From NCBI RefSeq assembly GCF_002113885.1, contig NW_018408610.1, positions 564,648 to 628,647 on the forward strand: a stretch of DNA of 64,000 nt. The letters run 5' to 3'. Made by a program: the position numbers and the translations under genes. The notes below the pieces were generated by a model, which did no database searches, was not told the DNA's origin, and saw nothing but the letters and a program-made list of their open reading frames with translations. Positions 14,300 to 52,477 of the stretch are shown here, one piece after another. This stretch comes from Mizuhopecten yessoensis (taxonomy: Eukaryota). Position 1 is the first letter of the stretch. Each line of letters starts with the position of its first letter.

Positions 14300-16278
14300 G
14301 ATACGTGGTTCAACAAATACACACACTTCGATCCAATAAAGTTGTTCAGAGGTCCAAAACTACTGCTCGAATAAAGAAGCGTCAATATAAACACACCAAC
14401 CGAAACACATAAACCGAAGTGCAGGGAAGTGCACAGAAATTCCAAGTAATCCTAGTTCCAACGATCAAGAACGTCCTTGACACAGTAATATCACGCGTGA
14501 AAATGACAACACAACACGTAGGCAACGTACGGAAACACTAGTTAGTCTGTCGTTGAAAACCAAGGCTTCCTAGAAAAAAAAATTGACGTCTGAAGGTAGA
14601 AGCTCTGCAAACAGTAACAGAAAATCCGTGTACTCCTTGAAAACCCCAACGAACACGAAACGTCCTTGACACAAAATCGCACGTGAAAAATGTCAACAAA
14701 AGCACGTGGTGAAACGCTACATAAACACGATAGTGAAGCGTAGTAAATCAAAGCTAAGTAGAATAAAAACTTAAACCTCGTAAGAAACTAGTGTTGTATA
14801 TGTAAACTGGCGGAAAAGCGTTAAAAAACTGGGAGAAACAAAAACAGACAGTGCTGATACTGAGACTGCTTAAAATGGCTGAAGACAATATCAATAGGGC
14901 TATCCCTATAGGCTGAATGACCATTGGTCAACCAGGTCACGTGACAAACTGTACACCTTACCAAATAAGGTAGCGTAGATGATTAGTAAATATTGTGTAC
15001 AAACAATTATTTAGGTAAACCCAAATAAACATAAAGACACAGTTCCAGAGTAACAAGGGAATGTACATTGGCTAGGTCTGAGAACAAATTCGTTCATTGC
15101 AGTGATTTTTCTCGACTTACAAACCACTTATGTAATTTTCAAAAAAGTAGACTCTATCAAAACAGTAATATATTCTTTATACTTTGTTTTATTTACTGTT
15201 GGCTGATTAGTTGAGGAGTACTTACAACATCTACAGGTATTCTAAGAGTTTGGTCCCGAAGTAAACGTGCCAAGTTGGTAATGGTTAAATGTATATCCGT
15301 TTGAGCTTCATTTAAAATCTGCATAACATCAATTTGATTTAGTTGTTTTTTCCTGAATCGGCCGAAGTATAATCACAATACAAACGATGAAGTGAAGCAC
15401 CAATTGACAATGAAGCCTGTAGATGCAGAAAGCCATACAAAATAAACATTTAAATGTACCATCCGTACGTTTGGACTTAGCAAACATAGAAATACTATAT
15501 ATATGAAAAGGCTCTCAAACGGAAGCATGAATGAGTAAATAGAAAAAATGAATTTAGATAATACGCAATACATTAAGATATATTATAACATTATCATAAG
15601 CAAAACTGTTTCATGGTCAAATTTCGAGAAATTTTTGAAAAGTTTGTATCTGGTAAGGTTTTTCTTTATTTAGGTTTTGAGAAATTAGGAGGTCGTTATT
15701 AGGAGTACAATTTAGTCCTTATTCTCTTCTGTGTTGTTTTAAAAGGGGATGTCTAATGTTGTTATTATACCTTCTTGTTTGTTGAAGCTCTGGTGTGGTA
15801 TCCACCTATACCTTTTCAATGGAAAGAGTTTAAGTGCACTCTTGTGATTTTATTCTGCCGATTTATGTGATCATGAATACATTGCACACTCAATGTTTCT
15901 GATTGATGAAAGTCGGTTAATCCTTCCCTACATATATAGTGTACCTTTTCCGATACAAATATCTTCGTTGCGATCTTTTATCGTTTGAATCCACCGACGA
16001 TAACACAGGTTTTCAACATACATGTCCAGGTAGGGACGTTGATAATTTAAATATTTTATGATACCTAAGCATAATCGTCCCTAACATGGTAGGGTGCAGG
16101 CAGTATCAATCAGACTGCAACACTCCACGTATCTTATCATAATTTTATGTGATAGAACCACTTGAAATTCGTTTAAATCTGACCGCACGCTGGTTTGCAA
16201 AATATTTATTAGGCAAACAAATGGTGTAAATATTTTGGGAACGTCCTAATGTTATTCATACTACAATCTATAAAATTG

Positions 16279-22307: not shown

Positions 22308-22329
22308 TTAAACGAATCGTTCCTGGTAC
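22308..22329 (-). CDS. Mucin exon 11 coding part (YQERFV*)
   Basis: tattacag acceptor in phase 2; TAA at 22308-22310. Confidence 0.7.
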
Positions 22330-23396
22330 CTGTAATATAGAGAACAGCAAAATTAGTTTTTATCAAATTTTGAACGAATGATTTTATGCAGAATCGGATT
22401 TAGTGAACAGTTGTTCAATACCATTGCTATTGCTGCTTAACGCTAAATGCTACAACATGCTAAATCTATTTTATCAAGAACGATACACCAGAAGGTATTG
22501 CACTGCATAGTCATTTTTACTGCAATAAACATTTTACAGGTAAGATATATCATTCTTTACCATTATACAGTATATTTACTAAAAATAACAGCACACATAC
22601 CCAAACATGTCGCTGTGTCGTGTTGACAACCTTGGGCGTCGGATATAAAGCTAAGGATTTAAACAAAATCATGACTGAATAATTATTCACATTATTTAAC
22701 AGTTTAAGATACTCATGACATATTTGAGTCTCGCAATCAGAAAACACGCAGTTTATTGAAATTGTGTAATTCAATATACACGAATGTCACAAATGACATT
22801 ACCCAAGGTTGAATAAAGTCACTCATATGTTACAATTTGCTCAATTTAGGTTGGTTGAATTATCATTGTCCATATATATATATATATGTTTATACAGCAA
22901 AACTTAATACGTGTACTCTATTCATTAATTTGCATATAAGGAATTACTTAAATGTTTTAAAATAAGATTTTGTTACGCATATGAAATCATCCTTCCATTG
23001 AAAGTAGTATATGTCATTAAAAACAAATTCAAGAATAGTCCAAGATTCTCAAGGTAAAATACGACTGCATCAGTTATAATCGCGAAGAATAGTTCCAATC
23101 AAGAGTCTTCCTATCTATATAGAAGATGAAGCAACCAAAAGAAGTTTTTCTAGCTGAGAGTAACGTAAATGCAATGTAAATATTTCATATTACACCTGCA
23201 ATTCTGTCAAAGGTATTGCAACATGGGATTTTGTTGAAAGATTTGTTTTGAAAGGTTTAAAACAAATATATCACAATAGTGACAGTAGCACCTTAAAAAG
23301 TCCTAATTCGAAAAACACAGAATATATTAATTTTCTTTGCATGACTCTGAGCATAACATTTGTTTCATATACATGTATCTGTTAATCATATGAAAC

Positions 23397-23427
<31 letters not shown>

Positions 23428-26400
23428 CCAAATTACAACTACACCATCTGATCAACGTGTAGGTAGGTGTATTTCATGTTAGACTGACCTGATTTTCTGT
23501 GTCTAATAATCTGTACGAGTCACCGGGTTCAACGTATTTGGGTCTTCTATGCTCATGTGCCGCTGAAGTGTGGTAGTCACGTGGCGGGTTCGATATTTCT
23601 ATTGGCAAATACATCCGAGACTTTTAAAAAAACAGTAAGAGACCGTTCTTAATTCATTTTACTCTAGTAGATGATGTGTTCTGTCAATTTTAGGTACGTA
23701 TGGTTAAAAATATTCAAAACAATGTTGTGTAATATGATAATTACCTTATAATCGTAAGATTAAGTATGATTTTGAATTAATATTTATCAACTGTCTATCG
23801 TTTTTATTTTATATTTTTTTATTTATAACTTCAGAAAACATTATTATGACAACGAACTTAAACTTTTGTTAAAAAAATGTGCATTACTTTTCAAAATTAT
23901 CAATTGAAACACAAATACAAAGAGTGTTAAACATTTTTTTGTATTTGTATTTTAAAAAACTATTGTGAAATTCCGTCTACAGAAAAAAGAGTACTGTGTC
24001 CTCTGAATCGGACGAAATCGACCGATAACGACAATTTCAGGAGCTGAGGACACTTTGGGGAAAATGAAAAAACAATAATAACTTACAACAGCGAACTTAA
24101 AAAATAATTCAATAATTTAAAATAGGTTATAAAAACACTATTAAAAATAGTGTAAAAGTACGCTATTTGTATTTTAATAAACTATTGTGAAAATCGCAAA
24201 TCTGTTCAGTGAGGTCTTTGACTTTACCGGTACAACTGGTTGGTCGCTGATTCTTTCCCAGCCGTTATAGTAGGCTGCCGGGCGTTCATTTTCGGAACTC
24301 CACACCATGTGTTCCCGTCTTGGTGGTCCCCGGTCCCCGGTCCCAATATTGTACGCCCTATTGGCCCTCAAGTTCTCCATTCTTGTTGGCATACTGATTT
24401 CACTGCCATAATCTCGATTATGTCTGTAGAAAAACGTCAACACGATCAAATATATTCAAGCTTTACCGGGTTATCTCCCCTTTGAGTATCATCAGAGTGT
24501 TTGATAGCAAAACAGTCTTAAAAAATAGCGTTTGAGTAATGAAAATAAATTTTAATGATTCATTTTGTTAATTCATTTCAACAGCAAATTGTATGCATAC
24601 CTTTAAAGAAAAGCTAAAAGAAACGGATTTAATACAAACGAGAATTTATATTTAATTATAGATATATTACACGAATACTTTGAGTATAGGTGCTCATTCG
24701 TTTAATTTCATTTCATTTAATTTCATTTCATTTATAACTACACTCGATAATTTATGATATACACTTTAAAAAAATCAAGGGGTCAGAACATACATTCAAT
24801 GTATAACAATCAGAAGTTTTCACTAACGTTTTTTCTCCGGGTTAATTCTTTTTTTCAGTGCGTACATTACACGTTAACATCATGAACATAGATGCGTACG
24901 GATTACACTATTTTAATTGCATTGATAAGCGTAAAGTTTACTTTCAATTCAAAAATCCATATTTCAAATACAAACGACCACTTTTTACAATCCTGAAAGT
25001 AACAATGTTAATTTACGTTTCAAATTCCTTGACGTCTGTCCGATGGAATACTACTTGCCTTGTACTACTATGGGTTTTCTTTGTTGTCCTTCTTTTCTTG
25101 CATACACATACGATGACGACTACGATGACGATGATAACTGCTCCTCCTAACCCTGCGGTAACTACCAGAATGTTTGTGAGGTCACTAGACTTTAAGCAGC
25201 TATCACTGTAATGCTCGAATACGGTGTCTGGGAGGCATCTGTAATACAAAGTTGAACCATGAAGCGGTACACCATACGCTCGTCACAGATTAGTTTGGCA
25301 GTTGTAATGATTGAAATGTAAAAAATATTTGGTTGGTTGGTTGATTGTATAGGGTTTAATGTTCTATCACCAGCTAATGTCATTCAAGGACGTACTTCCA
25401 TGTGAGTTGTGTGTGTGTGCTGGAGGCAAGGTTCATTGGTGTATTAGCCTCCTTGTGATAGCGCGGATCTGATGCAGACTTTAAAGTGCTATCTCACTGA
25501 GTTACTATGCCGAAGGCACCCAGCACAGAATTTCGTCCGGTCTCACCATACTGACAATGGATGAATCAGTTGTTGCAATAACCCTTAATGCTTAAAGTTA
25601 AGCAGGAAATAACAACTACCATTTTTAAGGAATTTGGTATGACCTAGCCTGGGGACAGAACCCATTACCTTCCTCACCTAGAAGAACGCTCTGCGTTAAA
25701 GCCAAAAGTGAGGTATTGCTAAGTGAGGCGCTAAGAAAAAATTGGAGGTGATTAGTTTAAAGAAGAAAGATATCAACTGTTGGAATTGAAAGAGTGAACT
25801 ACAACATAATTGAATGTATATACCCTTGATTTAATAAAATCACAAGGATAAACACCATACATTACGGCCGGATATAACGAAAGTTTTTATCAAAGTTATG
25901 TGTTTATGGTAATTATTCTTGTGTTTAAGTGAATCGGTTAGTAAACACCCCAGATATAAAGCGGATATCGTAATTCAGGGGACATAACTCGAAAGTCATA
26001 ACGGTCAAATAACAATGAAAATTTAAATTAAAATGTATAGGACTTTAAATTTAAGATTCCTTACTTTGTTTTTTTAGCGATAAATCTTTATGATATTAGC
26101 GATTTCTGCCACTTTATCCACATCACTTGAATGCAAAATACATGGTGATAAAATATCGTATTTAGTATATAAAATATGTATATACATATACAAAGAATTG
26201 ATACAAAATTAAAAACACTTTTTAACGTCAAAATTTGTGGAACAACAAGGATGGAAAAGAAAAAAAAATCATTTAGTTTCAAAGAAAACTGATATTAGTC
26301 TACACAATTATTTTTTTTATAAATAAATGTATTAAATCAAATTAACTTTAATTCATATTAATTTGTTTCTGTCGATATATTGAAAATTAAAAGAAATGTG

Positions 26401-29400
26401 CAATTTGGAAAAAAGTTGTATTGCTAATTGTTTTGAAGAAGAACCTTCTAAAATATTCATCGAAGCCACTGTAGATAAATTCTTGTTAGTGCATTTGAGT
26501 TGTCTTTCTTTGAAAACTAAATACAGTTTAAAAGACAGTTTTCAGTTGCTTATATTTTGTTTCCATTAGTACATTGTATACATGTCTGTGATAGTCATAG
26601 ACATTTTCAACAGTTTTCTGTTGATATGAATACAAAATTGCGGCTACTTCATAAGGGGGCGGAAACCGATGACGCAAGGATACAGATGATTTAAGAAAGG
26701 ACAATAATTTGTGCGATATTTATAAAGGTTATTGTATTCTTTTCAAATGGAAGTAAATGCTCTATATCATTTTATCGCAATGCCATCGTATTATAAGGTC
26801 TTTATGTGTTACTGTTTTGAATTTGTGAGCTTGTGAACTTATTCAACCGACTGTATCAGTCATTAATTCAGTCGATTCGCTGCTTTTTCAGACGTCACAG
26901 GAAACCATAATCAAATTCAATAAAATTACTTTCTGAAACTACCATCAACCTGTGACAGAACAGTTTCTCACGACGTAATGCGACGTCTGCAATTTATAGC
27001 GTTTTTACTAGTTATGCATAGAAGTATACGTTTAATTTCAACATCAATTATTTGTTTGGATTCTTCTTTAAATTCGGCGATTTTGATTAAAAAATCCACA
27101 CCAGACGTACGAAGAAATGAACCATCTTTTTGAAAATTTAGTTTGTAGATGTAGATGCAGAAGCTAAACAGGGTTACATCTCACAGCACAACATGGCCGT
27201 GTCTTTCGTTCAGCACTCAACACTTCATATTTAAACAGAATGAAAAATCCGTGTCTAATGTGTTCCGGTATATATTATGTAAAATACAGCTAAAGGGGAT
27301 AGGTGCCTCGAAAACCCTCTATAACAGTCATGCATGAAGTTCGGCGAGATATACAGTAGCTTTGTCATTGAAATCAACAAGCAGACCGACGTTACTTACA
27401 TGCACCTTGTGTTCCCTGACGGATGAAGTAAGCAAAGTCCGTAGTCACCACATAAATCGTACGTGCATTTCGAATTACAGATGAAAGGGTAATTTGATTT
27501 ATCACCTTCTTTGCAAATTTGGTATTCATTGCAGTTATCTTGTAAATCACAAATCCTTGAGTTTTTCGCTGAAAACAACGAATCAAATGAGTTATAGTGG
27601 ATATTTTTCAATTAATAATTAAATATATATATATATATATAAATGTAAACATGAAACATGCAGTAATGCTGTTGTTAGTAGTCAGTGTTAGTCAATGCAA
27701 TGTTTTCTTTTGTGAAATCAGATATCCTATGCTTCAAAGAGAGAAAACAATAAACTACACTACCATCAATAATTCTTCAAAAATTCAACTCAGATCATCA
27801 CCGAACAACGCTATATCTATATACATAAAATGTTTTACGAAAGTTATGATCAAATATATTTCACTTATGCATTAATGTTATAAAAGATAATACATTATTC
27901 ATTACTGTTCTTACTTACCTTTTTCTAAATCTATCTGCCATTTTGTGTTTGTCTTTGACTGATCAATGCCAACTGTTTTGTAACCAGGCAGGCTCACTTT
28001 CTCTTTTGCCCATTTATTATGTTTGACGGATTGCAGGATTGAGTCTTTCGACTTACCGGCAGCAAATCTAAGTCTATAGTTACATTCGACGCTACCGTTC
28101 CTACAACGTGGAATAATACAGGATGTTGTCGCTTTATTGACATAACTTCATAATAATACAATATATAAATAGCATGTCTGGTACTTTTACGGCAGGTACA
28201 TGAACTCTATTCGCAACTTAATACAAAAATTAACTCAGCATTTGATATAGTGTCATGTAATGGTAACTAAACTGAACCACAAACAAAACCGTCAGAACAT
28301 CGTGGGATCTTACAAAATACAACAATGTGAAAACCGTATTTAATTTATACAAAACATAGTTGTGTTCAAGAATCAGAATAAAGAAAATAAAGTTGTTGTT
28401 GAAATGATTATTTTCACAACATTTCAATTAAAATTGCATTTACCGTCCAAAACTATATACATTAAAACCTCGTTATACTGCCACATTGCAGAGAAATAGT
28501 GTCGATTTAATGGGGCTTTGGGCTGAACTGAGGGAAATGTATAAATATTTTTTAAGAAAATGGGGCATAGCAAGGGGACCTCTAATATGTTTGAAAAAAA
28601 GGTGGAACGAGGGACATTAGATCAGGGATTTTCCTGGTAACATCATCTCGCAATCAGATTAAAATTATGACGCTGACGAAAAGTGTAGGAAGCGATAGGA
28701 AGTAGAAATCTTATTGAGGAGTTAAATACTCACGTAAATCCGATGATAGTCACCCTCTCAAACCCATCTGTGCCATTGTACTTGGTATAAATCTGAAGAA
28801 ACAGAACACATAGAACATATGTTAACACTCAGCACAATCCGAAGGCTAAATTATGTTTAGAACAATCATCTAGAAGACGGAACTTAAATGAAATAATGGG
28901 GGGATGTAAGTAATGTAAGGAAAACAATCTGTAACCAACGTTGTTCGTTTTTAGCCGCGGTCACATATCTTACGGTCACACGTAGTTATAAACGTACTTT
29001 GAACTTCAAGAAACCCATGATTTAGCCGTGGTTAGGCAAAAATTGTTAAACATGTTCAAAATACTATTTCTACGGTGAATTTAGATGCCAGGACCCTACT
29101 GTCACCGTAGTATGAACATAGTTGACCCTATTTGGCCGTAATTGACCCTACTTGACTATAGTGTTTATCGTAGTTGACCGTTGTATCATGGCACTATGGT
29201 TAACACTAGGGTCAAGTAGGGTCAAATAGGGACAACTGCTAGAGTTGGACTACGTTTGAAGTACGTTAATAGTACTGTGACTAGGGTCAAGTGGGGCTAA
29301 ATAGGGTTAAGGGTTGAACTATGTTGAACTACGTCTAACTACGTTTAATACGTTTTACTAAGATCGCCTACGGTCTACAATTTGTACCACAGTCAACTTC

Positions 29401-32400
29401 GGTCATCCCCCACTACGGTCAACTACGTGCGTGACCGTAAGATGTGACCGCGGCATTAGCACGGCGTTCAGAAAACTGCGACATAACTGATCACTCACAT
29501 TCAACCAGGTACATGTTGTAAACATAAGTCAAAGATGGTATATGTGGGATAATGAGACAGATACTGGATAAGAAATGCTAGTCAACAGTCTGTTATTATC
29601 AGGGATAAAGTTATCAAATGAAAAAAAAACTTCGCGAGAACCCCTCTAGAAATTGTACCGACAATGTTGTCTACCAAAATAACTCGTCGCAGACAAAAAT
29701 AGTATAAGAAATACATATAAAAAATAGATACATATAAAACAAAATAAAAATATAAACAATTTCATATTATGTAAATATTATTTGCAGAGCGATATATTAA
29801 AACGGTTTAATAGGAAATTAGTTTCTCCTTTCTCTTCATGCTTTGTCCCTTTGTTCTATTTTCCATTTTCAATTTTTTCTCGTCTACTGAAAAGCCGCAA
29901 GGCCGTTATAGCGGACGTAAAACCATCAAATAATAAATAATAATAAAAGACTTGAAGGTGGTGTAGCTGTAGGTAATCGACCAATGTTGACCGCATTCGT
30001 TTATCGCGGTCCAAACGGTTGAACCGGTTGGGCCGGAGTCGTTCGTTGTTTAATAAGGTCAGACTTAGTAATCTGATGCTGCTTTCAGGCGAGCTCTGAC
30101 AAACCCTTGCAAGGGCTGCATAAACATTTGCAGGTCCGCCAGTGTTTATACCCGAAAACGTTACATTTAAAAACAGACAAACTGGTTGAACAGGATACGC
30201 GAACGGGGCTATGTCACAGACAGTGAGCCAGCGATACCTCCAATAAGTGGAAGCGTAAAAGTATTTGTCAATTTTCTACTTTTTTATATATATATATATA
30301 TTTGTAAGTAGTATATTATAATATATTTAATATACTTCTTCACTCACCATGTTACGGAATGACTCGCTATAAGTTTGATAAAGAGCAGACGATTTGTCCT
30401 TCAAGTCTTCGGGAAACACAATATCAACAACGACCGTCAACTTTACTGCAATGATTATTTGTTCTGAAATATAAAGTAATCAAGAAATAATCAGTTCCTA
30501 TTATTTCATAAATAATTCAATTATGCTCATACCATGTGACCAGTTGAATGAAACTGAAAACCCATTGAATAGGTTGGTCTCTGTTGACTTTGCAATTATA
30601 ATTTGGCACGATTTAAGCTTGCAAAACGACACCATAAATTAAATGTTTATGACAATGGTGTTTTAATACAAATGTACTTCGCGCGATAAAGATAATCTGC
30701 GATTTAAGAGGCAACAATATAGGCAAATCATGTATGTATAATGTAGTGAAAATTGAAAAAATGCTTCTTTCATGGATCAAAACGTCCCTTTGTGATTAAG
30801 TAATCCCCATTTTGGTACACCTCAACTACATTTCTCAGGCGACAACAACTTTTTTCAACTTATATTAAACTCTCTTGTTGGCCTAAAAGTTGGCGTGCGG
30901 GGGTCTTTATGTGGGAGGAAACCGGTGTACCCGGAGAAAACCCACGTGATCAGGCAGGTGACCCCAGCCCTTTACACGTCTGATCGAACCCCGGGCGCCT
31001 TGGTGAAAAGCAAATGAGCCATTCACTGTGTACCCAACCACCAAATTGATTTAGAATACATATTCGCATGATACAAACTATTTATTTCACAGAAGCTACT
31101 TTTGCGTTCAAATTTCATTTTGTTTAAATGAAAACAATCAACAATCTTCCCTGTTTCGTAACCTATCTTTTCGCACATGTGACGTCACGCTATCATAGAT
31201 CTTTCGGAGCGTAATCGATAAGTTTGTACTGGTGAGCTTTGCATTGATCGCATGTATATATCACAATTATTGATAAAATAACATTTTAATTCATTAGAAA
31301 AAAATGTAAAGGAATAACTATCATACTCATATTAAAATATAGGAAAATGGCACTACAATATTTATTTAATTGAGGGCAGTTGAGGTATAAACGTTAACAT
31401 TTCTAACTCTTACCTGCTGAAATAACAGAGCTACCAGGAGTAAGTGTGGTTGGTTTGATAGCAAAAGGCGTAGTTGTAGTAGGTATGGTCGTTGTAAGTG
31501 TCGTTGTTGTAGGTGTGGTTACAGTAGGTGTTGTTGTATTAGGTGCGGTTGTAGTTGGTGTGGTTGTAGTAGGTGTGGTTGTAGTAGGTGTTGTAGTAGT
31601 TGTGGTTATAGTAGGTGTTGTAGTAGGTGTTGTTGTAGTAGGTGTGGTTGTAGTTAGTGTTGTAGTGGGTGTGGTTGTAGTAGGTGTTGTAGTGGGTGTG
31701 GTTGTAGTAGGTTTGGTTGTAGTCGGTGTTGTTGTAGTGGGTGTGGTTGTAGTAGGTATGGTTGTAGTAGGTGTGGTTGCAGTAGGTGTGGTTGTAGTAG
31801 GTTTGGTTGTAGTAGTTGTTGTTGTACTAGGTGTGGTTGTAGCAGGTGTCGTTGTAGTAGGTGTTTTAGTGAATGTGCTTGTACTAGGTGTTGTAGTAGG
31901 TGTGGTTGTAGTAGGTGTTGTTGTAGTAGGTGTTGTTGTAGTAGGTGTTGTTGTAGTAGGTGTGGTTGTAGTAGGTGTTGTTGTAGTAGGTGTGTTTGTA
32001 CTATGTGTTGTAGTAGGTTTTGTTGTAGTCGATGTTGTTGTAGTTGGTGTAAGTGTAGTAGGGGTGGATGTAATAGGTATTATTGTAATCGGAGTAGTTG
32101 TAGTAGGTGTGGTTGTAGTAGGTTTGGTTGTAGTCGGTGTTGTTGAAGTGGGTGTGGTTGTAGTAGGTATGGTTGTAGTAGGTGTGGTTGCAGTAGGTGT
32201 GATTGTAGTAGGTTTGGTTGTAATAGTTGTTGTTGTAGTAGGTGTGGTTGTACTAGGTGTGGTTGTAGTAGTTGTGGTTGTAGCAGGTGTCGTTGTAGTA
32301 GGTGTTTTAGTGAGTGTTGTTGTACTAGGTGTTGTAGTAGGTGTGGTTGTAGTAGGTGTTGTAGTAGGTGTTGTAGTAGGTGTTGTAGTAGGTGTGGTTG

Positions 32401-35400
32401 TAGTAGGTGTGGTTGTAGTAGGTGCGGTTGTACTAGGTGTTGTAGTAGGTGTTGTAGTGGGTGTGGTTGTAGTAGGTGTTGTACTAGGTGTGGTTATAGT
32501 AGGTGTTGTAATAGATGTTGTAGTAGGTGTGGTTGTACTAGGTGTTGTAGTAGGTGTTGTAGTAGGCGTGATTGTAGTAGGTGTGGTTGTAGTAGGTGTT
32601 GTAGTAGGTGTTGTAGTAGGTGTGGTTGTAGTAGGTGTGGTTGTAGTAGGTGCGGTTGTACTAGGTGTTGTAGTAGGTGTTGTAGTAGGTGTGATTGTAG
32701 TAGGTGTGGTTGTAGTAGGTGTTGTAGTAGGTGTGGTTGTAGTAGGTGTGGTTGTACTATGTGTTGTAGTAGGTGTGGTTGTACTAGATGTTGTAGTAGG
32801 TGTGGTTGTACTAGGTGTTGTAGTAGGTTTGGTTGTACTAACTGTTGTTGTAGGTGTGGTTGTACTAGGTGTTGTTGTAGTAGGCGTGGTTGTACTCTGT
32901 GTTGTAGTAGGTGTGGTTGTAGTCGGTGTTTTTGTAGTAGGTGTGGTTGTAGTCGGTATTGTTGGAGTAGGTGTGGTGGTATTAGGTATTGTAGTTGGTG
33001 TGGTTGTAGTAGGTGTTGAAGTAGGTGTGGTTGTAGTAGGTGTTGTTGCCGTAGGTGTTGTAGTAGATATGGTTGAAGTCGGTATTGTTGTAGTAGGTGT
33101 GGTTGTACTAGGAGTTGAAGTAGGTGTTGTAGTAGGTGTGCTTGCAGTCGGTGTGGTTGTAGTAAGTGTGGTTTTAGTCGGTGTTGTTGTAGTAGGTGTG
33201 GGTGTAGTCGGTGTTGTTGTAGTAGGTGTGGTTGTCCTAGGTGTTGTAGTAGGTGTGGTTGTACCAGGTGTTGTTGTAGATGTGGTTGTACTAGGTGTTG
33301 TAGTAGCTGTGGTTGTATAAGGTGTTGTAGTAGGTGTTGTTGTACTAGGTGTTGTAGTAGGTGTTGTAGTAGTAGTTGTAGTGGGTGTGGTTGTAGTAGG
33401 TGTGGTTGTAATAGATGTGGTTGTACTAGGTTTTGTAGTATGTGTTCTAGTCGATGTGGTTGTAGTCGGTGTGGTTGTAGCAGGTGTGGTTTTTGTGGTT
33501 GTAGTAGGTGTTGTTGTTTTAGGTGTTGTTGTAGTCGGTGTGGTTGTAGTAGGTGTGGTTGTAGTAGGTGTGTTTGTAGTAGGTGTTGTAGTAGGTGTGG
33601 TTGTAGTAGATGTGGTTTTAGTCGATGTGGTTTTAGTAAGTATTAATGTAGTCGAAGTTGTTGTAGTAGGTGAGGTTGTAGTAGGTGTGGTTGTAGTAGG
33701 TGTGGTTGTACTAGGTGTGGTTGTAGTAAGTCTGGTTGTACTAGGTGTTGTAGTAGATGTTGTAGTAGGTGTTGTAGTCGGTGTTGTTGTAGTAGGTGTG
33801 GTTGTAGTGGGTGTGGTTGTAGTAGGTGTGGTTGTACTAGGTGTTGTAGTAGGTGTGGTTGTAGTCGATGTGGTTGTAGTAGGTGCTGTAGTTGTGGTTT
33901 TAGTAGGTATGGTTGTAGTCGGTGTGGTTGTAGTTGGTGTGGTTGTAGTCGGTGTGGTTTTAGTCGGTGTGGTTGTAGTATGTGTGGTTGTAGTATGTGT
34001 GGTTGTAGTAGGTGTGGTTGTACTAGGTGTTGTAGTAGGAGTGGTTGTAGTAGGTGTTGTTGTAGGTGTTGTTGTAATCGGTGTGGTTGTAGTGGGTGTG
34101 GTTGTAGTAGGCGTGGTTGTACTAGGTGTTGTAGTAGGTGTGGTTGTAGTCGATGTGGTTGTAGTAGGTGCTGTAGTTGTGGTTTTAGTAGGTATGGTTG
34201 TAGTCGGTGTGGTTGTAGTTGGTGTGGTTGTAGTCGGTGTGGTTGTAGTCGGTGTTGTTGTAGTAGGTGTTGTTGTACTAGGTGTTGTTTTAGGTGTTGT
34301 TGTAGGTGTTGTTGTACTAGGTGTTTTAGTAGGTGTAGTTGTAGGCTGTTTTGTCCTAGTAGGTGTGGTTGTAGTCAATGATGTTGTAGTAGGTGTGGTT
34401 GTAGTAGGTGTTGTAGTAGGTGTGGTTGTAGTAGGTGTGGTTGCAGTAGGTGTGATTGTAGTAGGTTTGGTTGTAGTAGTTGTTGTTGTAGTAGGTGTGG
34501 TTGTACTAGGTGTGGTTGTAGTAGGTGTGGTTGTAGCAGTTGTCGTTGTAGTAGGTGTTTTAGTGAGTGTGGTTGTACTAGGTGTTGTAGTAGGTGTGGT
34601 TGTAGTAGGTGTTGTAGTAGGTGTTGTAGTAGGTGTGGTTGTACTAGGTGTTGTAGTAGGTGTTGTTGTGGGTGTGGTTGTAGTAGGTGTTGTACTAGGT
34701 GTGGTTATAGTAGGTGTTGTAGTAGGTGTTGTAGTAGGTGTGGTTGTACTTGGTGTTGTAGTAGGTGTTGTAGTAGGTGTTGTAGTGGGTGTGGTTGTAG
34801 TAAGTGTGGTTGTAGTAGGTGTGGTTGTAGTAGTTGCGGTAGTACTAGGTGTTGTAGTTGTTGTTGTAGTCGGTGGAGTTGTAGTCGGTGTGGTTGTAGT
34901 CGGTGTTGTTGTACTAGGTGTTGTAGTAGGTGTGGTTGTACTAGGTGTTTTAGTAGGTGTGGTTGTAGTAGGTGTGGTTGTAGTAAGTGTTGTTGTAATA
35001 GGTGTGGTTGTAGTAGGTGTTGTTGTAGTAGGTTTGGTTGTACTATGTGTTGTAGTAGGTGTGGTTGTACTAGGTGTTGTAGTAGGTGTGGTTGTTCTAG
35101 CTGTTGTTGTAGGTGTGGTTGTACTAGGTGTTGTTGTAGTAGGTGTGGTTGTACTCTGTGTTGTAGTAGGTGTGGTTGTAGTCGGTGTTTTTGTAGTAGG
35201 TGTGGTTGTAGTCGGTATTGTTGGAGTAGGTGTGGTGGTATTAGGTATTGTAGTTGGTGTGGTTGTAGTAGGTGTTGAAGTAGGTGTGGTTGTAGTAGGT
35301 GTTGTTGCCGTAGGTGTTGTAGTAGATATGGTTGAAGTCGGTATTGTTGTAGTAGGTGTGGTTGTACTAGGTGTTGAAGTAGGTGTTGTAGTAGGTGTGT

Positions 35401-37252
35401 TTGCAGTCGGTGTGGTTGTAGTAAGTGTGGTTTTATTCGGTGTTGTTGTAGTAGGTGTGGGTGTAGTCGGTGTTGTTGTAGTAGGTGTGGTTGTCCTAGG
35501 TGTTGTAGTAGCTGTGGTTGTATAAGGTGTTGTAGTAGGTGTGGTTGCAGTAGGTGTGATTGTAGTAGGTTTGGGTGTAGTTGTTGTTGTTGTAGTAGGT
35601 GTTGTTGTAGTAGGTGTGGTTGTAGTAGGTGTGGTTGTTTGGTGTAGTTGTGTAGTAGGTGTGGTTGTAGCAGGTGTCGTTGTAGTAGGTGTTTTAGTGA
35701 GTGTGGTTGTACTAGGTGTTGTAGTAGATGTGGTTGTAGTAGGTGTGGTTGCAGTAGGTGTGATTGTAGTAGGTTTGGTGTAGTTGTTGTTGTTGTAGTA
35801 GGTGTTGTTGTACTAGGTGTGGTTGTAGTAGGTGTGGTTGTAGTAGGTGTTGTAGTAGGTGTGGTTGTACTAGGTGTTGTAGTAGGTGTTGTAGTGGGTG
35901 TAGTAGGTGTTGTACTAGGTGTGGTTATAGTAGGTGTTGTAGTAGGTGTTGTAGTAGGTGTGGTTGTACTAGGTGTTGTAGTAGGTGTTGTGGGAGGTTT
36001 TATTGCAGTATGTGCTGTTGTAATTCGTGTAAATGTAGAAGGTTTTATTGTAGTAGGTGTGGTTGTGAGACGTGTGGTTGTAGTAGCCATCTTTTTTGTG
36101 ATTGTCGTTCGTGCTGCAGTCGATTGTGACAGTCCATAGGCTACTGCCAGATATACCGTTATAAGGACTGAAATGACAAAGATATATTTACACTAATGAT
36201 GTTATAGGCAACAAAGTACATTTTTCGATATCTGGAGATTATGTAACTAATTTTTGCTTCGTAGATACACTTTTCTGATGATGTGCCTTTTTATTTGGTA
36301 AATTATTTTCTTTTGGCTTATCAGTTATACAAAAATCACGCTGATGTTGTAGTCATCTAAAAGGGAAGAACCTTTTAATTGGCGTATAATATTCATTATG
36401 CGGTACCAAAAGCGTAAACGGCTTTTTTTTATATTTTGATATTCATGGTAATACAGCGAAATGAATCCCCCTCCGCGAAATTTACCAATTTTGCAGTAAT
36501 AAGAAGCTAGAGTTGGTACAGTTAATTGCCTGTCGTGACTTCATCCACCCTTAATGGTTATTAATTATTAAAATGCATACAAAGATTATATAAGAGATAC
36601 TAGGTTTATATTTCATTATTGTTCCGTTCGATCAAAGCTGTAACTGTTGAGGATGTGATCCTGGTGATTCTAAGAGATTTAAGTCGCCTGCATGGTCACC
36701 ATTTTAATGTTATATTGGAGAAAACAAATTACAGTGCATGTTTAAGGTAACCGTAGTTTACTTTCACAGTCGACTGCAGAACACAAAAAAAATGTACTTC
36801 AATGTGTTAGTACCGTGGATATTTTACTATCATATCAAAGTAATCGTGGTAAAACGTAAATTCATTTCGTCCAGTAGAAATTTAGCAGTCTAAAAACAGT
36901 GAGATATCATGATTGAATAACACCAATTCAATACATGATACTAGATATATATAGTAACCAGTTAGTCACAAATTACATATTTGGTTATAATGTTGTACAC
37001 ATTCAATAACATTGCTGGTTACCTGTGTGTGAAATACTTTTTTAACTACATTATACATGAAATAGCAGCAAATAAAACCCTTTATTTATTGTCGGAAAGG
37101 CTTTACCTGGGGATAAATTGGGGGAAATCTCTAAGAGAAAGGTTCGCGAGAGGATCGATTATATTTGCTAAATGTCGGGCGTTCAAACATTGGTGTGATT
37201 TATCTGTTTACGTCCGAGAGAGGTGTGTTTTGTACTTACGGTGGAATCGCAT
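22308..37252 (-). CDS. Transmembrane mucin, MUC3/12/17-like architecture (SP-PTS-SEA-EGF-TM-tail), 11 coding exons
   Basis: Exons 37240-37252, 31414-36167, 30348-30463, 28734-28792, 27919-28100, 27400-27568, 25017-25238, 24228-24423, 23489-23620, 22601-22650, 22308-22329. All introns GT-AG with matching phases; one 1-bp deletion at ~35778. Confidence 0.9.
22601..22650 (-). CDS. Mucin exon 10: cytoplasmic tail
   Basis: ccttag|LYIRRPRLSTRHSDMFG|gtatgt; phase 0 to 2. Confidence 0.7.
23489..23620 (-). CDS. Mucin exon 9: cytoplasmic tail
   Basis: SRMYLP...DSYRLLDTENQ; 132 bp, phase 0 to 0; CAG|gtcagt donor, weaker AAG acceptor. Confidence 0.75.
24228..24423 (-). CDS. Mucin exon 8: cytoplasmic tail
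   Basis: ttctacag / gtaaag; HNRDYGSE...AAYYNGW...VVP; phase 2 to 0. Confidence 0.8.
25017..25238 (-). CDS. Mucin exon 7: end of EGF, TM helix and basic juxtamembrane segment
   Basis: CLPDTVFEHYSDSC..ILVVTAGLGGAVIIVIVVVIVCVCKKRR. Donor is either GT at 25016 or GC at 25058 (same phase). Confidence 0.88.
25331..25760 (-). mobile_element. tRNA-derived SINE with Meta-type core (mucin intron 6)
   Basis: Minus strand: B-box-like gggttctgtccc, then gtcataccaaa..aaaaatggtagttg..agcattaagg (Meta-domain-like), ending in a (CAAC)n tail. Confidence 0.65.
27400..27568 (-). CDS. Mucin exon 6: Cys-rich / EGF-like
   Basis: ICDLQDNCNEYQIC..FICNSKCTYDLCGDYGLCLLHPSGNTRC; tttcag / gtaagt; phase 1 to 2. Confidence 0.9.
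27919..28100 (-). CDS. Mucin exon 5: SEA C-terminal part with G-S-V motif
   Basis: NGSVECNYRLRF...IDLEK; ttgtag / gtaagt; phase 2 to 1. Confidence 0.88.
28734..28792 (-). CDS. Mucin exon 4: SEA middle (59 bp)
   Basis: IYTKYNGTDGFERVTIIGFT; cttcag / gtgagt; phase 0 to 2. Confidence 0.88.
28954..29454. mobile_element. PIF/Harbinger-like MITE, 501 bp (mucin intron 3)
   Basis: ~34-bp TIRs GCCGCGGTCACA(TA)TCTTACGGTCAC..CGTAGTT with TTA-like flanks; internal ttgacccta / tagggtcaa subrepeats. Confidence 0.8.
30348..30463 (-). CDS. Mucin exon 3: SEA domain N-terminal part
   Basis: EQIIIAVKLTVVVDIVFPEDLKDKSSALYQTYSESFRNM; tttcag / gtgagt; phase 1 to 0. Confidence 0.88.
30886..31042 (-). mobile_element. 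Truncated V-SINE (mucin intron 2)
   Basis: V-domain signature GTGGGTTTTCTCCGGGTACACCGGTTTCCTCCCAC preceded by B-box GGTTCGATC on the minus strand. Confidence 0.75.
31414..36167 (-). CDS. Mucin exon 2: rest of signal peptide plus Thr/Pro-rich PTS domain (~1,580 aa)
   Basis: Acceptor tttgtcatttcag, donor G|gtaaga; (TTTP/TTTTP/STTTP)n; frameshift at ~35778. Confidence 0.9.
37240..37252 (-). CDS. Mucin coding exon 1 (MRFH, start of signal peptide)
   Basis: aaacATG CGA TTC CAC C|GTAAGT joins exon 2 to give MRFHLLITVYLAVAYG-LSQST. Confidence 0.75.
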
Positions 37253-37839
37253 GTTTGACAGCGACCTGGCTTCTCTCCCTCTTGTTTACACTGCGAGGTA
37301 ATACAATATTAACATTGAGACTGTATGAATAGGATCTTACTTAATTTTCCACTTCATATGAGATTGATGAAGTTTTTTTTATTTAAAATTCCTTTAACAC
37401 ATGGTAGAGCATTTTTGCGAAAACGTTTAAAAAATGTAACTCGTTCAGTGTCATCTTGAAGCTTCCCCTCCAGCCTCGAACTTGAGATAAACGTTTAGAG
37501 AAAACATTTTGGTGACATTAGGCTGTTCCAGGAATCTTGTGTGTACTGTTGATAACAATACTTAAAAATATGAAAGATATGTAAAAGCATATATCAGATC
37601 ATTAATGACTAAAATATTAAACATGAAACTATACCGGCTATGTTGGGGAAAGGGCGTTCAATGCTTTTTTTATAAATCTATTCTCAGTTTTTGCGCTCCG
37701 AAAATATATATATCAACAATAATGATTGGCAAAATGACGTCAAGAACGGAATCATGACGTAATGTTAACATAGTATGAAATGCTGCCAAAGTATGCGGAA
37801 CTCCATTAACATGTACGTATACATAAAAAACAAGAGATA

Positions 37840-39140: not shown

Positions 39141-40367
39141 TAAAATTCTAGGCACAACTCATATTATGACGACCAAGTACAACGTGAGAACAATCTGTTG
39201 TCGCGTGGTCATGTTCATTAAAAAGGGTTGGGTAGCTAGTAGACGCTGGACTACGTAAATAATGTACTAAGATACCAAAGACACGATATCACCCTCTAAG
39301 TGTTAGGGACAGGAACATAGCATACTTTCCAATAAATAATTTACAGGTGGCTAACATCTTATATCTTTCCTGTCATCGAACGTAATAGGGTTATCATTAA
39401 ATAGTATTGATTCTTATTGTTGTCTTTCATTTCAACCGGAGAAGATGCTGTATGCATTACGCTTAAAATGTGCGGTGACAACATTTCGCGTTTGTGCTTA
39501 CAGAACTTATTCGCAGGGTCCGATGTACACCCGCTAATGATATTTCGCGGATCTCTTATACATTGATAAAATTTGAAATCAGCTTTATTTCAGATTGTTG
39601 TGCAATGCATATTGAGTGTAATCGTAAATAGTAAATCAATTTTGAAACGGGTATACCGCCAGTCAATGTTTGCGTAAATTTGTGTTATGATTACAATGTT
39701 CCTGAGTGCTGTCATGCATATCCATTTTGAGAGTAAAAGAAATATTTACAGAATAATTATTAACGTTTGTCCCAATACTGAACCAATGAATTCAATCAGC
39801 TTCACATTGACATATGTTATCTTCGTGTTAAACTTGATTCACATTAACATTTTTTTTTTATCTTTTTGTCTTTTAATGTCACATTGACATGTTCTATCTT
39901 CAATGACAATGTATCAAATCGGCTTCGCATTGACAAATTTTAACTTTCACAATGACATATTTTATATATATAATGTATTAAATCAGCTTCACGTAGACAT
40001 ATTTTATCTTTAATGTATTAAATCAGCTTTATATAGACGGAGTTTATCATTGTTCAATCAAATCAGTTTCACATTGACATATTTTGTATTTAATTTATTA
40101 AATCAGCTTCACATAGACGGAGTTTATCATTGTTCAATCAAATCAGTTTCACATTAACATATTTTATATTTAATTTATTAAATCAGCTTCACATAGACAT
40201 ATTTATCTTAAATGTATTAAACCAGCTTCACATAGACGGAGTTTATCATTGTTCAATCAAATCAGTTTTACATTGACATAATTTATATACAATGTAATAA
40301 ATCAGCTTCACATTGACATATTATATATATAATGTATTAAATCCGCTTCACACTGACATATTATATT

Positions 40368-41930
40368 CACTGCCCTCCAAAAGTTCTGTTACATATGTAC
40401 AATTTTGCTGATAAATTATCTTTGACAAAACTATTGGAAAAAATAATTTTCTATAAATGTTTTTCTATTGATGAAAATGGAGATAATGTTATTGAGATGA
40501 TTTGCTATCAATGATTATCCAAATTCTCAAAAATCTATCAGATGTTTGAGAATTGTTAGATTTACTTAAATGTACTCGGTATTTAATCTAAATACTCATG
40601 AGAAGAAATGCAGCGAATGACAAGAGAAGACCGATTCCTGTGTGTTTTTTACCATCGCAATGGTATTGCTGCCGCCCAAACTGCAAGGATTCTTGTAACC
40701 AGCAGGTAAGTGAATGTTTTCATCGCGGATTTTGGTGCATTTGCATACTTTTCTTAATTAGAATCTGTCTATAGTTGATTAACTGTTTCTATTTTGTTGC
40801 AGACAGAACGTGTACAGGGCCATTAAACGGTTCCAAGATACCGGGAACTATGAGGATCGGGAACGTTCTGGCCGCCCACGGATTTCTACCCCTCGGGATG
40901 ATTGATTATTAGTCCGGGCCAGCCTCAGAAATCGCAAGGATGCCGTTCTGGAGCTTCTAACGGAGTGGATCCAAAATGGTGTGGTGGCGTCGAATACCAC
41001 AGTGAGGAGACGATTACACAACGCGGGATTGAAAGGTTGTGTTGCTGTCAAAAAAACACTTTTGACTGCTACCCATCGTCGGAAAAAGATTGACAATTGC
41101 ACAGAACCATGCAAATTGGACATTGGTGGACTGGTCGACTGTTTTATGGTCTGACGAGTCTAGGTTCACCATTTTCCAAACAGATAGCAGGACGTATGTT
41201 AGAAGAAGGGCAAATGAACAATTGCGGCAAGACTGTGTGGTGCCTACAGTTAAGTTTGGTGGTGGTGGTGGTGTGACAGTTTGGGGGGCAATGTTCTACC
41301 GAGGGACTCGATACCTCACTCCTTTGAAAGAAAATCTTAACGGAACCAAATACATTGACATTTTAGAAAACAGCGCGGTACCATCAGCACATCTGCTAGG
41401 CTATGGAAACAACTATTTCTTCCTGGATGACAATGCCCCATGCCACCGGGCAAGAATAGTGAACGAATGGAAGGAGGTCAACAATGGTTTGTCCTTGGAG
41501 TGGCTCCCACAGTCCCCCGACTTGAACCCGATAGAAAACTTGTTGAGAGATCTGGGTTTGGAAGTTCGCCGACACAAGAGCAGAAACCTAAGGGAACTTG
41601 AAGCTGCCATACAGCTTGCATAGGATGGAATACCTGCTAGGATATGTAGAACTTTGGTGAGGAGTATGCCTGAACGTATAAAGGCTGTGATTAGAGCTCG
41701 TCGAGGATACACTAAATATTAATGGAATTACAATGTTTTTACAATTTACATACTAACTCATTTTTGTAACATTATGTTAACTTAACATAATGAAATCAAC
41801 GGAAATAATTGTCAAATAACTTAGTTAATGATATACACAAATGATAATAAAAACAAGATTGGCATAATTCTGCACTTCTGTAATTATATATCGAAAAATG
41901 CAAATGTAACAGAACTTTTAGAGGGCAGTG
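40368..41930 (+). mobile_element. Full-length Tc1-family transposon (1,563 bp)
   Basis: 27-bp TIRs CACTGCCCTC(C/T)AAAAGTTCTGTTACAT; TA on the right flank, TT on the left. Confidence 0.93.
40608..41722 (+). pseudogene. Tc1 DD34E transposase, disrupted
   Basis: Intron 40706-40802; motifs GRPR, WSDES, DNAPCH-(34)-PIE, GYTKY*. Stops at 40903 and 41621, +1 frameshift at ~41085. Confidence 0.9.
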
Positions 41931-44900
41931 TATTAAAGGTGTTAAATCAGCTTCATATTGACACATTTTATCTGTAATGATTTTTAATCAGCTTCACATT
42001 GATATATTGTATCTATAATATGTTTAAACAGCTTCACGTTGACATATTTGATATTTAAGGTATTTAATCAGCTTTATATTGACATATTTCATCTGTACAT
42101 TTTTAATCAGCTTCATATTGACATATTTTATATTTAAGGTATTTAATCAACTTTACATTGACCTGTTTTATATTTAAGGTATTTAATCAACTTTACATTG
42201 ACATGTTTTATATTAAATGCATTTAAACAATTTCACATAGCATATGTTATCTATAATGTATCTAATCAGGTTAACATTGACTTGTCAGCTTCACATTGAC
42301 ATATTTCATATTTAATGCAATAATTTAGCTTCATATTAACATATTTTATCTGTAATGTTTTTAATCAGCTTCACATTGACATATTTTATCTATAATATAT
42401 TTAATCAGCTTCACATTGACATATTTTATTACCTTTAATATATTTAATCAGCTTCACATTGATATTTTTTATTATATATAATGTATTTAATCAGCTTCAT
42501 ATTGACATCTGTTTTTCTTTAATATGTTTAATCAGCTTCACATTGACTATTTTATATTTAATGTATTAAATTAGCTTCATATTGACATATTTTAATATCT
42601 ATAATATATTTAATCAGATTCATGTTGACACATTTTATTTGTTATGTTTTTAATCAGCTTCACATTGACATATTTTATGTTTAATGTAATAATTTAGCTT
42701 CATATTGACATATTTTATCTGTTTTATCCGTAAGGTATTTAATCAGCTTCACATTGACTATTTTATATTTAATGTATTAAAATAGCTTCATATTGACATA
42801 TTTTATTTGTGATGTATTTACTCAGCTTCACATTGACATATTTTATCTATAATGTATTTAATCAGCTTTACATCGACATCTTTTATCTTTATGGTACAGT
42901 TAGAATTACGCCCAAGTATCTATATAAAGAGACTGCACTGTTAATTAAGTGTATTTTTTGTATCTGTATTCAAGCGTGAAGGAGGTGTGAAATTTCCACA
43001 AAAAGTGTGATTGACACAATTAATACAGGCAAGGTCCAGGTGTGTTTTAATAGCTGCCAAATCATCGATGAACAATGCAATAGACAACGTATGTGTACTA
43101 GTACTGTACCTGACATTACAGCCGTATTACTAACAGTTGTACAGTCATTGTAATAACATGTAAATTGCATTGGAGAATTAGAAAAAGTGCACAATATACC
43201 AATCGAATATGAGGATTTGTTTTCATTTCGTAACATCTATCAACTGATCTTATCATATCGCACATATGTGAGCGCTTTTACATCGCATAGTTGTGATCAC
43301 TATGTGTGATGTGCGCAGGGTAAATATGATGCGGTTTGCAATCAACTGTAAATTGCAAGAGCAATGCATAACTTCTTTGTCATTAGGAGACAACAAAAAA
43401 AGCGATTGCTAAGACAACTACAAGAATAACATTATGACCACGTGCAGGAGTAACTTTTCGTATGGCTGATTAGTTTACCGTCCACGATACAGCCATATGA
43501 AGACGGGTGCCTAGGGAGAAAATGTTTGAAAGAGACTAAAAAAACACAGAAAGATTAGGAAGAGAAAAAACAGAAAATAATACATTCATTGTATTGCTAT
43601 GGGGCAGTTGATTAATGTTAGTCTTAGTAGAAGCCACGGTAAAAACAAAACTCTGTTTTTGCAGAGGGAGGGAGCACACAAGTCGCCTCTCATACACATG
43701 CACGATACACGGGCAATATGATTGGAATAGAATAAAATAGAATAGGACAGATCAATAATTGATTTCTCCAATAGCCCCTAATCAAGATACCCGGAAGAAA
43801 CTACCTCCGAATCTGCGGGGAGGGAGCGGAGTCACACATTAGCCGCCTCTTATGATTATAAACTGAGATACAACAGGCCTTATTTAAAACAGTTTAGCAA
43901 TGAGACATCAAAGATAGAAAATGTTTTATGAACATCCACTAACCATTTTCTTTATGATGAATAGAACTGAGGTATACAATTTCGTTATTAAGTTTTCAAA
44001 ATATACATAAACTTCGTAAAGTGTTTATCTTTGATATAAAATGACACATTTTCTTTACATGCGATATTGATTTTATGAGTAATCTTGCAGATAACATACA
44101 AGGAAGTGATCGAATGTGAAACACAGGTAAATTATATCCATTCTACATAGCTACGTAGGTATGTCTAGACAGCCTGTTTGTGTTGGATCATTCTGACAGG
44201 TATCCTAGTCAACATCTAAAGTAGCAACATATGTCGCGGGTCATGACCTTAAAATGTATTAACTCCCTGCTCTTATATGTATTATCTTCAATGTCTGTGT
44301 TTAAACAATCATTTGAACTCTCTAATACTTTTTCACTTGTATATTTATTGTTCTTTTTCAATGCAGCATCCTAGTCAGTATAAGTGAATTGTAAACATAA
44401 AATAAGTTTTTACTCATTTTTTTCCGTTTTGTGTGTGTGTTGATGACGTCATCCGTTTCATTCTTCCATTTGTTTTGGCATTATCTTGATTTATACTGTT
44501 ACAATTTTATAATTAAAATTAGAGCCATCATTTATTTGAATTCTGTTTTTTAAAACTTACTGTTTAAAATGCTCTAAAAATGTTGCGTGTCACATGTTAA
44601 CGGTGAAAGATTAAATGAAATGTGTACTTGATAAAAGGTTTACTGAATATTGCATGTCACATGCGATCCATTATTGATCGGGGTTTCTCTTTACCTGAAC
44701 TAATACATGCATGTAGGGGTACTTCACTATTACCTTTACAAACACTGATAACTCACACTGACACATAAGGAGGTGCAAGTAGCATTCATAGGTTTAAGCA
44801 GGTGTGACTTGTCTACAGACCAAGCGCCATGGATTTAAACATTAAGGGTAAGTCAAATTTGACAGATTTCAGAATATTCTTTGCATGTCAAATGTTCAAA

Positions 44901-52200: not shown

Positions 52201-52440
52201 AATACAGAGACAACAATATATACACATGACACATACAGAGACAACAAATTATACACATGACACATACAGAGTCTACAAACTATACACACGACAAATACAG
52301 AGACAACAAACTGTACACATCACACAAACAAAGACAACAATCTATACACAGGACAAATACACAGACAACAAACTATACACATGACACAAATAGAGACAAT
52401 TAAGTGTACACATGACACAAACAGAGAAAATAAACTATAC
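49250..52440. repeat. 31-bp satellite, array A
   Basis: Unit acaaatacagagacaacaaactatacacatg, about 100 copies. Confidence 0.95.
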
Positions 52441-52477
52441 AGACGTCAGATACAGTGACAACAAAATATACCGATGC

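Follow-up and report, generated by a model that had tools for sequence, protein, structure and literature searches.

The locus described here raises the question of whether a long Thr/Pro-rich repeat exon and the small exons that follow it belong to a single gene for a membrane-attached mucin, and why public annotation holds no such gene. It occupies the minus strand at positions 37252..22308 of a 64,000-nucleotide stretch of the genome of the Yesso scallop, Mizuhopecten yessoensis (C5283:564648-628647), referred to below as the window. The gene was read from the letters of the window, and coordinates are window positions. An earlier note on this DNA, which was based on its letters and open reading frames, had proposed a hidden, complete invertebrate transmembrane mucin with an architecture like that of MUC3, MUC12 and MUC17. 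Our reading is that this locus is probably one gene, encoding a type I transmembrane mucin-like glycoprotein, that it is one of at least four paralogues, and that it has a counterpart in Pecten maximus.

The gene consists of 11 exons whose boundaries could be located exactly and whose phases all chain. All exons predicted in the earlier note were found at their minus-strand positions, and the model was reproduced base by base. The predicted order of domains was recovered as well, i.e., a signal peptide, a domain with a high content of proline, threonine and serine (PTS), a SEA domain, groups of four and six Cys residues, a transmembrane (TM) helix, and a cytoplasmic tail. The individual elements are as follows, with a slash marking a splice border, the point of frame change, or the bond expected to be cleaved.

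37252-37240, minus strand: exon 1, 13 bp (ATG CGA TTC CAC C), encoding MRFH plus one base, followed by the donor GTAAGT
36167-31414, minus strand: exon 2, 4,754 bp, encoding the remainder of the putative signal peptide (LLITVYLAVAYG...) and the PTS (mucin) domain, with the phase-1 donor CAG/GTAAGA
35765..35780, minus strand: frame-change site in exon 2, ACT ACA CCA AA/CCT ACT, with a 17-nt unit against the 18-nt repeat unit
30463-30348, minus strand: exon 3, SEA strand 1 and helix 1, with a last codon ATG that is the start codon of the RefSeq model
28792-28734, minus strand: exon 4, SEA strand 2, ending in ...IIGF and equal to residues 2-20 of XP_021370063.1
28100-27919, minus strand: exon 5, the turn with the SEA cleavage site, (T)NG/SVECNY, then strand 3, helix 2, and strand 4
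27568-27400, minus strand: exon 6, a Cys-rich module with 4 Cys, then Cys 1-4 of the EGF-like unit
25238-25059, minus strand: exon 7, Cys 5-6 of the EGF-like unit, the TM helix (AGLGGAVIIVIVVVIVCVC), the stop-transfer sequence KKRR, and a GC donor
24423-24228, minus strand: exon 8, cytoplasmic tail (RANRAYNIG, AAYYNGWE)
23620-23489, minus strand: exon 9, cytoplasmic tail (NPPRDYH, EPGDSYRLLDTENQ)
22650-22601, minus strand: exon 10, cytoplasmic tail (LYIRRPRLSTRHSDMF)
22329-22308, minus strand: exon 11, the final six codons (YQERFV) and TAA

All introns are of the GT-AG type except intron 7, which has a GC donor in classical context (AAG/GCAAGT). Spliced together, exons 1 and 2 would encode MRFH-LLITVYLAVAYG-LSQ..., a typical signal peptide. 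The exon lengths add up to 5,873 nt, i.e., 3n-1, which fits a single missing base, and the encoded chain comprises approximately 1,957 residues.

The main argument for joining the mucin exon to the exons for the SEA, EGF-like and TM parts comes from a comparison of related loci. Three further copies are present in the M. yessoensis genome, namely, a tandem copy on this contig, in the same orientation and at a distance of approximately 34 kb (C5283:~636.4-657.5 kb), and the copies on C2813 and C4239; in P. maximus, the locus of XP_033728110.1 displays an A/C-rich Thr/Pro array followed by counterparts of exons 3 to 11. In five of five loci, a phase-1 GT donor closes the Thr/Pro frame, and the acceptor of exon 3, likewise of phase 1, lies 0.4-2.2 kb further on; because of this pairing we infer that the two parts form one unit. 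The order, AG/GT (or GC) positions and phases of the nine 3′ exons are identical in the three paralogous loci and also conserved in P. maximus; the GC donor of intron 7, which RefSeq uses, is kept in all four M. yessoensis loci. Toward the 5′ end, all four M. yessoensis loci keep, upstream of the PTS array, the acceptor of exon 2 together with its hydrophobic start, and the 13-bp exon 1 is letter-identical, flanks included, in C2813 and C4239, the two loci whose contig reaches far enough. The PTS exon itself varies widely in length, from 4.75 kb in this gene to 8.7, 11.8, and 16.3 kb in the other copies. Exon 3 is 84, 76, and 50% identical to its paralogues and 50% to its P. maximus counterpart, with conserved splice sites.

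The public annotation covers the 3′ part of the gene. RefSeq lists XP_021370063.1, a protein of 330 aa named "interphotoreceptor matrix proteoglycan 2-like" (IMPG2-like), in which the translations of exons 4 to 11 occur in order and residue for residue, with the residues T, A, I, R, and G at split codons as predicted; it begins with a Met that corresponds to the final codon of exon 3. Since this protein matches exons 4 to 11, eight of the ten junctions, including the one with the GC donor, have been modelled independently. As its N terminus falls midway through the SEA domain and no signal peptide is present, we regard it as a truncated model. No public model found for the gene includes the signal peptide, the mucin exon, or the initial third of the SEA domain, and no annotated protein contained the end of the PTS exon (word search, 806-2,565 aa) or the N terminus (word search, 267-850 aa). 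The description of the gene as hidden was thus borne out, with a C-terminal fragment as its sole RefSeq representative. One of the paralogues carries the database name GPR116. At the P. maximus locus (LR736856.1:12073281-12103227), two genes are annotated, one with a Thr/Pro-rich product running off the locus and one for a 263-aa protein starting past the SEA exons; SEA exons 3 to 5 are seemingly in neither model. The earlier note had suggested that the 13-bp first exon and the frameshift could split the annotation. As a paralogue with different frame breaks is truncated in the same way, the PTS exon itself is the more likely cause.

These gene calls could also be taken at face value, with a secreted mucin composed of signal peptide and PTS domain ending in intron 2 and a separate short membrane protein arising from exons 3/4 to 11. 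Such an arrangement would account for the fact that RefSeq and the original annotation model the 3′ part only and that two genes were called in P. maximus, and the unspliced frame of exon 2 does end in a stop directly after the donor (...AGKS-stop, three codons into intron 2). However, the 3′ models start within the SEA domain or use intronic open reading frames, and they have no signal peptide although the SEA and EGF-like parts must be extracellular. Moreover, the phase-matched donor and acceptor are kept in five loci of two genera, and the entire unit, from signal peptide to tail, was duplicated together. We therefore consider two transcription units to be quite unlikely and retain the reading as a single gene.

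The mucin exon stands out by its composition. The plus strand shows a G-C skew of +0.86 at 31.4-36.1 kb, i.e., the minus strand is A/C-rich, and Tandem Repeats Finder detected approximately 327 copies of a 15-bp unit across 31473-36086, which translate on the minus strand to TTTTP, TTTP, and STTTP units. Read as two frame pieces, exon 2 comprises 1,582 codons, of which 66.6% encode Thr, 17.6% Pro, and 4.9% Ser; Cys is absent. The Thr/Pro reading follows one frame from 36165 to approximately 35776 and then a second frame that is free of stops for 1,469 codons, to 31406, a length far beyond chance in DNA of approximately 40% G+C. A single frame change near 35772 separates the two pieces, and at this site no GT..AG pair able to remove it as an intron was found. 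In the assembly, the gene is thus interrupted by a 1-nt frameshift in the PTS exon and not complete, as the earlier note had it. Two plus-strand open reading frames rich in Gly and Val (624 and 714 aa) that cover the repeat were rejected as genes, as they are antisense mirror images of the A/C-rich array.

For the exons that follow, the earlier note had predicted a SEA domain spread over exons 3 to 5, and the profile and structure comparisons agree. In searches with individual exons, exon 3 alone gave a weak match to Pfam SEA (PF01390; E 0.031, profile positions 9-36), and exon 5 and the tail exons gave none. An older annotation of the tandem paralogue, OWF42429.1, holds exons 3 to 5 spliced as in the present model (84, 89, and 60% identity, respectively) and reaches 33.5 bits against a gathering score of 26.4 bits. 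AlphaFold (AF2) was used to model the SEA-to-EGF part of this paralogue. The model (predicted local distance difference test [pLDDT], 75.6) displays the β-α-β-β-α-β order of SEA domains; the five structures that score highest against it (Z 11.6-9.8) are all SEA domains (TMPRSS6, a mouse membrane protease, and MUC16), followed at Z 7.0 by the next match, and Foldseek agrees with the SEA fold. The structural comparison also places the cleavage site: residue 61 of the model, which is the Gly in FTNG/S, is exactly where the cleaved N-terminal fragments of both MUC1 (6bsc_A) and GPR110 (8hc0_B) terminate. By sequence, the SEA domain of ADGRF1 was the only relative of solved structure (E 3e-5), with an alignment that spans the cleavage turn; a profile search of the PDB found nothing beyond ADGRF1, and no MUC1 or MUC16 chain appeared at E ≤ 10.

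The motif at the turn reads GSVEC here; GSVEC, GCVEC, and GSTEC in the paralogues; and GSVQC in P. maximus. According to the literature, autoproteolysis occurs at GSxxV with V or I at the x positions (PMC9478142), and in MUC3, MUC12, and MUC17, the motif is G/S[V/I]VV (PMC13643018). As GSVEC departs from these motifs, self-cleavage at NG/S is plausible but not assured. Two side observations concern the same domain. In exon 5 of the C2813 paralogue, the turn reads G-C-V, with Cys in place of the expected nucleophilic Ser. Furthermore, most six-frame matches to Pfam SEA across the genome cover only profile positions ~2-42, which suggests that many SEA genes of this genome share an intron at the position of the exon 3/4 boundary.

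Exons 6 and 7 contain ten Cys residues (4 + 6), the last six of which are spaced C-x4-C-x5-C-x9-C-x-C-x12-C, fitting an EGF-like unit. Pfam matches to EGF families were weak (Pvs28 EGF, E 0.006-0.02, with E 0.021 for exon 6; PF00008, E 3.1), as were Foldseek matches to EGF chains of factors Xa and IXa (E 0.06-0.16). The TM segment AGLGGAVIIVIVVVIVCVC has a hydropathy of 3.08 and is followed by KKRR. The cytoplasmic tail, for which the earlier note gave about 160 residues, measures 146 residues after the TM helix and ends in ...Q-E-R-F-V. A class I PDZ-binding motif needs Ser or Thr at position -2; with Arg at this position, the end of the tail is not of this class. The blocks ANRAYN, YYNGWE, PPRDYH, EPGD-YR-LDTENQ and the end FGY-ERFV are kept between both genera and may act as sorting or SH2-type motifs. 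When the exon 8 tail profile was searched against 1.84 billion representatives, only two true relatives were found, both of them scallop proteins.

Substitution patterns differ along the gene. For the TM and tail exons, the ratio of nonsynonymous to synonymous substitution rates (dN/dS) is 0.15-0.55 in all pairs, and exon 8 is 85-89% identical among paralogues. Among the three close copies, the ectodomain exons show dN/dS values of approximately 0.55-1.4, and one value of 6.8 is based on a very small number of synonymous changes. Compared with C4239, synonymous sites in exons 3 to 6 are saturated, with a proportion of nonsynonymous differences of 0.30-0.48, indicating long-term constraint. In the same comparison, dS is saturated for exons 3 to 6 but reaches 0.41 for exon 7 and 0.15 for the tail, a drop that suggests homogenisation of the 3′ ends among family copies by gene conversion.

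Several points speak against the reading of the locus as one functional mucin gene. Junctions 1-2 and 2-3 appear in no public model. The above-threshold SEA score and the fold come from the spliced protein of the paralogue and not from the gene's own joined exons; the Cys-rich/EGF module, folded alone in order to see an EGF fold, reached a pLDDT of 52.8, too poor a model for a structural search; the cleavage motif GSVEC is non-canonical; and glycosylation, cleavage, tissue, and tail function are all matters that we infer. Finally, the assembled PTS frame has one break in this gene and several in every paralogue, and it is interrupted in P. maximus as well. Because no copy has an unbroken PTS frame, the gene, or at least its mucin exon, might be decaying, with a genuine frameshift near 35772, and the dN/dS values near or above 1 in the SEA and EGF exons of the three close paralogues would be in line with decay. 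Against this stand the splice sites and all nine downstream reading frames, which are intact in every copy, the purifying selection on the tail, and the existence of a RefSeq model. Short-read assemblies are known to mis-assemble PTS exons; human MUC3A measures 8.8 kb in GRCh38 and 15.9 kb in T2T (PMC9578598). Frame breaks in all copies fit such mis-assembled repeat exons, as documented for human MUC3A and MUC12 (PMC9578598), and an error of the short-read assembly is the most likely origin of the frameshift. We therefore regard decay as improbable and the intact gene as the better reading.

If the gene is translated as modelled, the N-terminal signal peptide (MRFH-LLITVYLAVAYG) would send the chain into the endoplasmic reticulum. 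The Cys-free domain of approximately 1,580 residues, with 67% Thr, would be densely O-glycosylated and form a stiff, extended brush on the cell surface. The adjoining SEA domain may self-cleave at NG/S while folding, in which case the brush would be held noncovalently on a membrane stub, or, given the departure of GSVEC from the canonical motif, may stay intact. The module with ten Cys and the TM helix would anchor the stub, and the 146-residue tail, the most conserved part of the protein and under purifying selection, would provide links to sorting or signalling through Tyr-based motifs (YYNG, YRLL). A likely role would be that of a glycocalyx barrier or lubricant on mucosal epithelia that is released under mechanical load.

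The neighbours of the gene within the window are satellite DNA and transposons. An A/C-rich block to its right was considered as a further mucin exon and rejected, as it is a 14-kb satellite whose 31-bp period is not a multiple of 3 and which is thus non-coding; it also explains why the right end of the window is so strongly skewed. Scans of the window for tRNA genes and Rfam families found nothing. The other features noted are as follows.

49253-63219, A/C-rich on the plus strand: satellite in which a 31-bp unit is repeated approximately 450 times
10363-14326, minus strand: three consecutive open reading frames of 357, 535, and 458 aa with a reverse transcriptase match (E 3.7e-11) and a weak tyrosine-recombinase match, which look like a DIRS-like retroelement
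8648-9274, minus strand: open frame of 208 aa with TPNLTTPTITTP-like repeats adjoining the retroelement, which may be a further Thr/Pro-rich exon or a repeat artefact
41090-41623, plus strand: fragment of a DDE_3 transposase (E 6.9e-14) between arrays of 40-bp tandem repeats at 40000-40366 and 41931-42891
37329-37371, ~80-120 bp upstream of the start codon: ~43 bp that match at least 40 further genomic sites with 85-93% identity and are probably part of a dispersed repeat

How, then, does the scallop gene relate to known mucins? Operationally, a SEA-type membrane mucin is defined by a PTS domain, a SEA domain, and a membrane anchor (Lang 2006, PMC1552070). In the scallop gene, 89% of the exon 2 residues are Thr, Pro, or Ser, encoded by tandem 15-bp units, a SEA domain is recognised via the spliced protein of the paralogue, and a predicted signal peptide is combined with a single TM helix. 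A bivalve thus has a small, partly tandem family bearing the full operational signature, i.e., a signal peptide, a giant single-exon PTS domain, a SEA domain with a Gly-Ser turn, an EGF-like module, a TM helix, and a conserved tail. As the mucin part is cut away in every public model of this family, proteome-based surveys would miss these genes as mucins, and mollusc mucin inventories derived from annotated proteins are undercounts. In the scallop, the gene is a candidate surface-barrier gene for gill, mantle, or gut. The same study calls a protein a "strong candidate" if its SEA domain groups phylogenetically with those of known mammalian mucins (PMC1552070). A tentative proposal, to which we lean less than to its opposite, is that scallops and the vertebrate lineage of MUC3, MUC12, MUC13, and MUC17 (and IMPG2) share by common descent the juxtamembrane SEA - EGF-like - TM module, preceded by a single-exon PTS array. 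If true, it would mean that SEA-type membrane mucins, which have been said to have "emerged in vertebrates" (PMC9578598), predate the protostome-deuterostome split; shared ancestry or convergence bears on how cell-attached glycocalyx barriers arose.

The closest resemblance in layout is to the vertebrate gut membrane mucins MUC3A/B, MUC12, and MUC17 of the 7q22 cluster. Both have type I topology, a giant single-exon PTS domain in exon 2 after a small first exon (PMC9578598; 4,754 bp in the scallop), a juxtamembrane SEA domain with a Gly-Ser turn and an EGF-like module between SEA and TM (PMC13643018), and tandem paralogues with very different PTS lengths. The vertebrate genes are further characterised by two EGF-like (Cys-rich) domains flanking SEA, a class I PDZ tail end, and a locus between ACHE and TRIM56 (PMC13643018, PMC9578598); across phyla, a synteny comparison for this locus would not be informative. 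The scallop gene, in contrast, has no EGF-like domain before SEA (exon 2 is without Cys, and SEA strand 1 starts in exon 3), carries GSVEC instead of GS[V/I]VV, albeit with Gly-Ser at the right structural position, has an extra 4-Cys unit, and possesses a longer tail without a class I PDZ end that is unrelated to anything outside scallops. Of the proposed MUC3/12/17-like architecture, the likeness in layout therefore stands, whereas family membership is not supported, three defining features having been looked for and not found. The earlier note had also compared CNSKCT with a CVTKCT segment of MUC3; a literature search for CVTKCT returned no match.

A true lophotrochozoan orthologue or co-orthologue of the MUC3/MUC12/MUC17 family would share their gene plan, and the scallop gene does, with a small first exon and a giant PTS exon 2 followed by approximately ten small exons for SEA, TM, and tail (PMC9578598). 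As a lead only, the nearest named Atlas clusters by language-model features are chordate mucin-12 and mucin-17-like clusters (0.92, 186-190 shared features), with IMPG2 at 0.85, and in a comparison by shape, an arthropod "mucin-17-like" SEA+EGF cluster was one of those listed, again a lead and not a test. The missing Cys-rich domain before SEA, the deviating motif, the C terminus ...ERFV, and the absence of tail relatives outside scallops argue against orthology, as do the ADGRF1 domain as the best SEA match in the PDB and the database names, IMPG2-like for the gene itself and GPR116 for one paralogue. In addition, combinations of SEA, EGF, and TM can be created by domain shuffling. We consider orthology distinctly unlikely and prefer the reading as a scallop SEA-type membrane mucin of similar layout.

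IMPG2 (SPACRCAN), after which NCBI named the gene, fits equally well in module order. Compared by description, its juxtamembrane order of SEA2, two EGF-like domains, TM, and a 121-aa tail is the same, with similar sizes (PMC10558372). However, IMPG2 has two SEA domains, whereas the scallop gene has one, placed after the PTS domain, which is preceded by the signal peptide only; IMPG2 also has a chondroitin-sulphate/hyaluronan-binding core and no Thr-Pro tandem array, and it has been described as vertebrate-specific (PMC10558372). MUC13 presents PTS - SEA - EGF-like units - TM on a small scaffold (PMC1552070), but has an EGF domain before SEA, and the PTS domain of chicken MUC13 is spread over many exons (PMC1552070), in contrast to the single exon of the scallop. 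The SEA domain of MUC1 (6bsc) gave no match at the sequence level, and MUC1 lacks an EGF-like module and has a different tail; nevertheless, its cleaved N-terminal fragment ends on the equivalent Gly, with a root mean square deviation of 1.6 Å and 25% identity. ADGRF1/GPR110 (7wxu, 8hc0) is an adhesion G-protein-coupled receptor with GAIN and 7TM domains and without a mucin domain, yet its SEA domain, the best sequence match of solved structure, has the identical F-x-N-G/S turn, and its cleaved fragment superposes on the scallop model at 1.4 Å over 57 residues with 33% identity.

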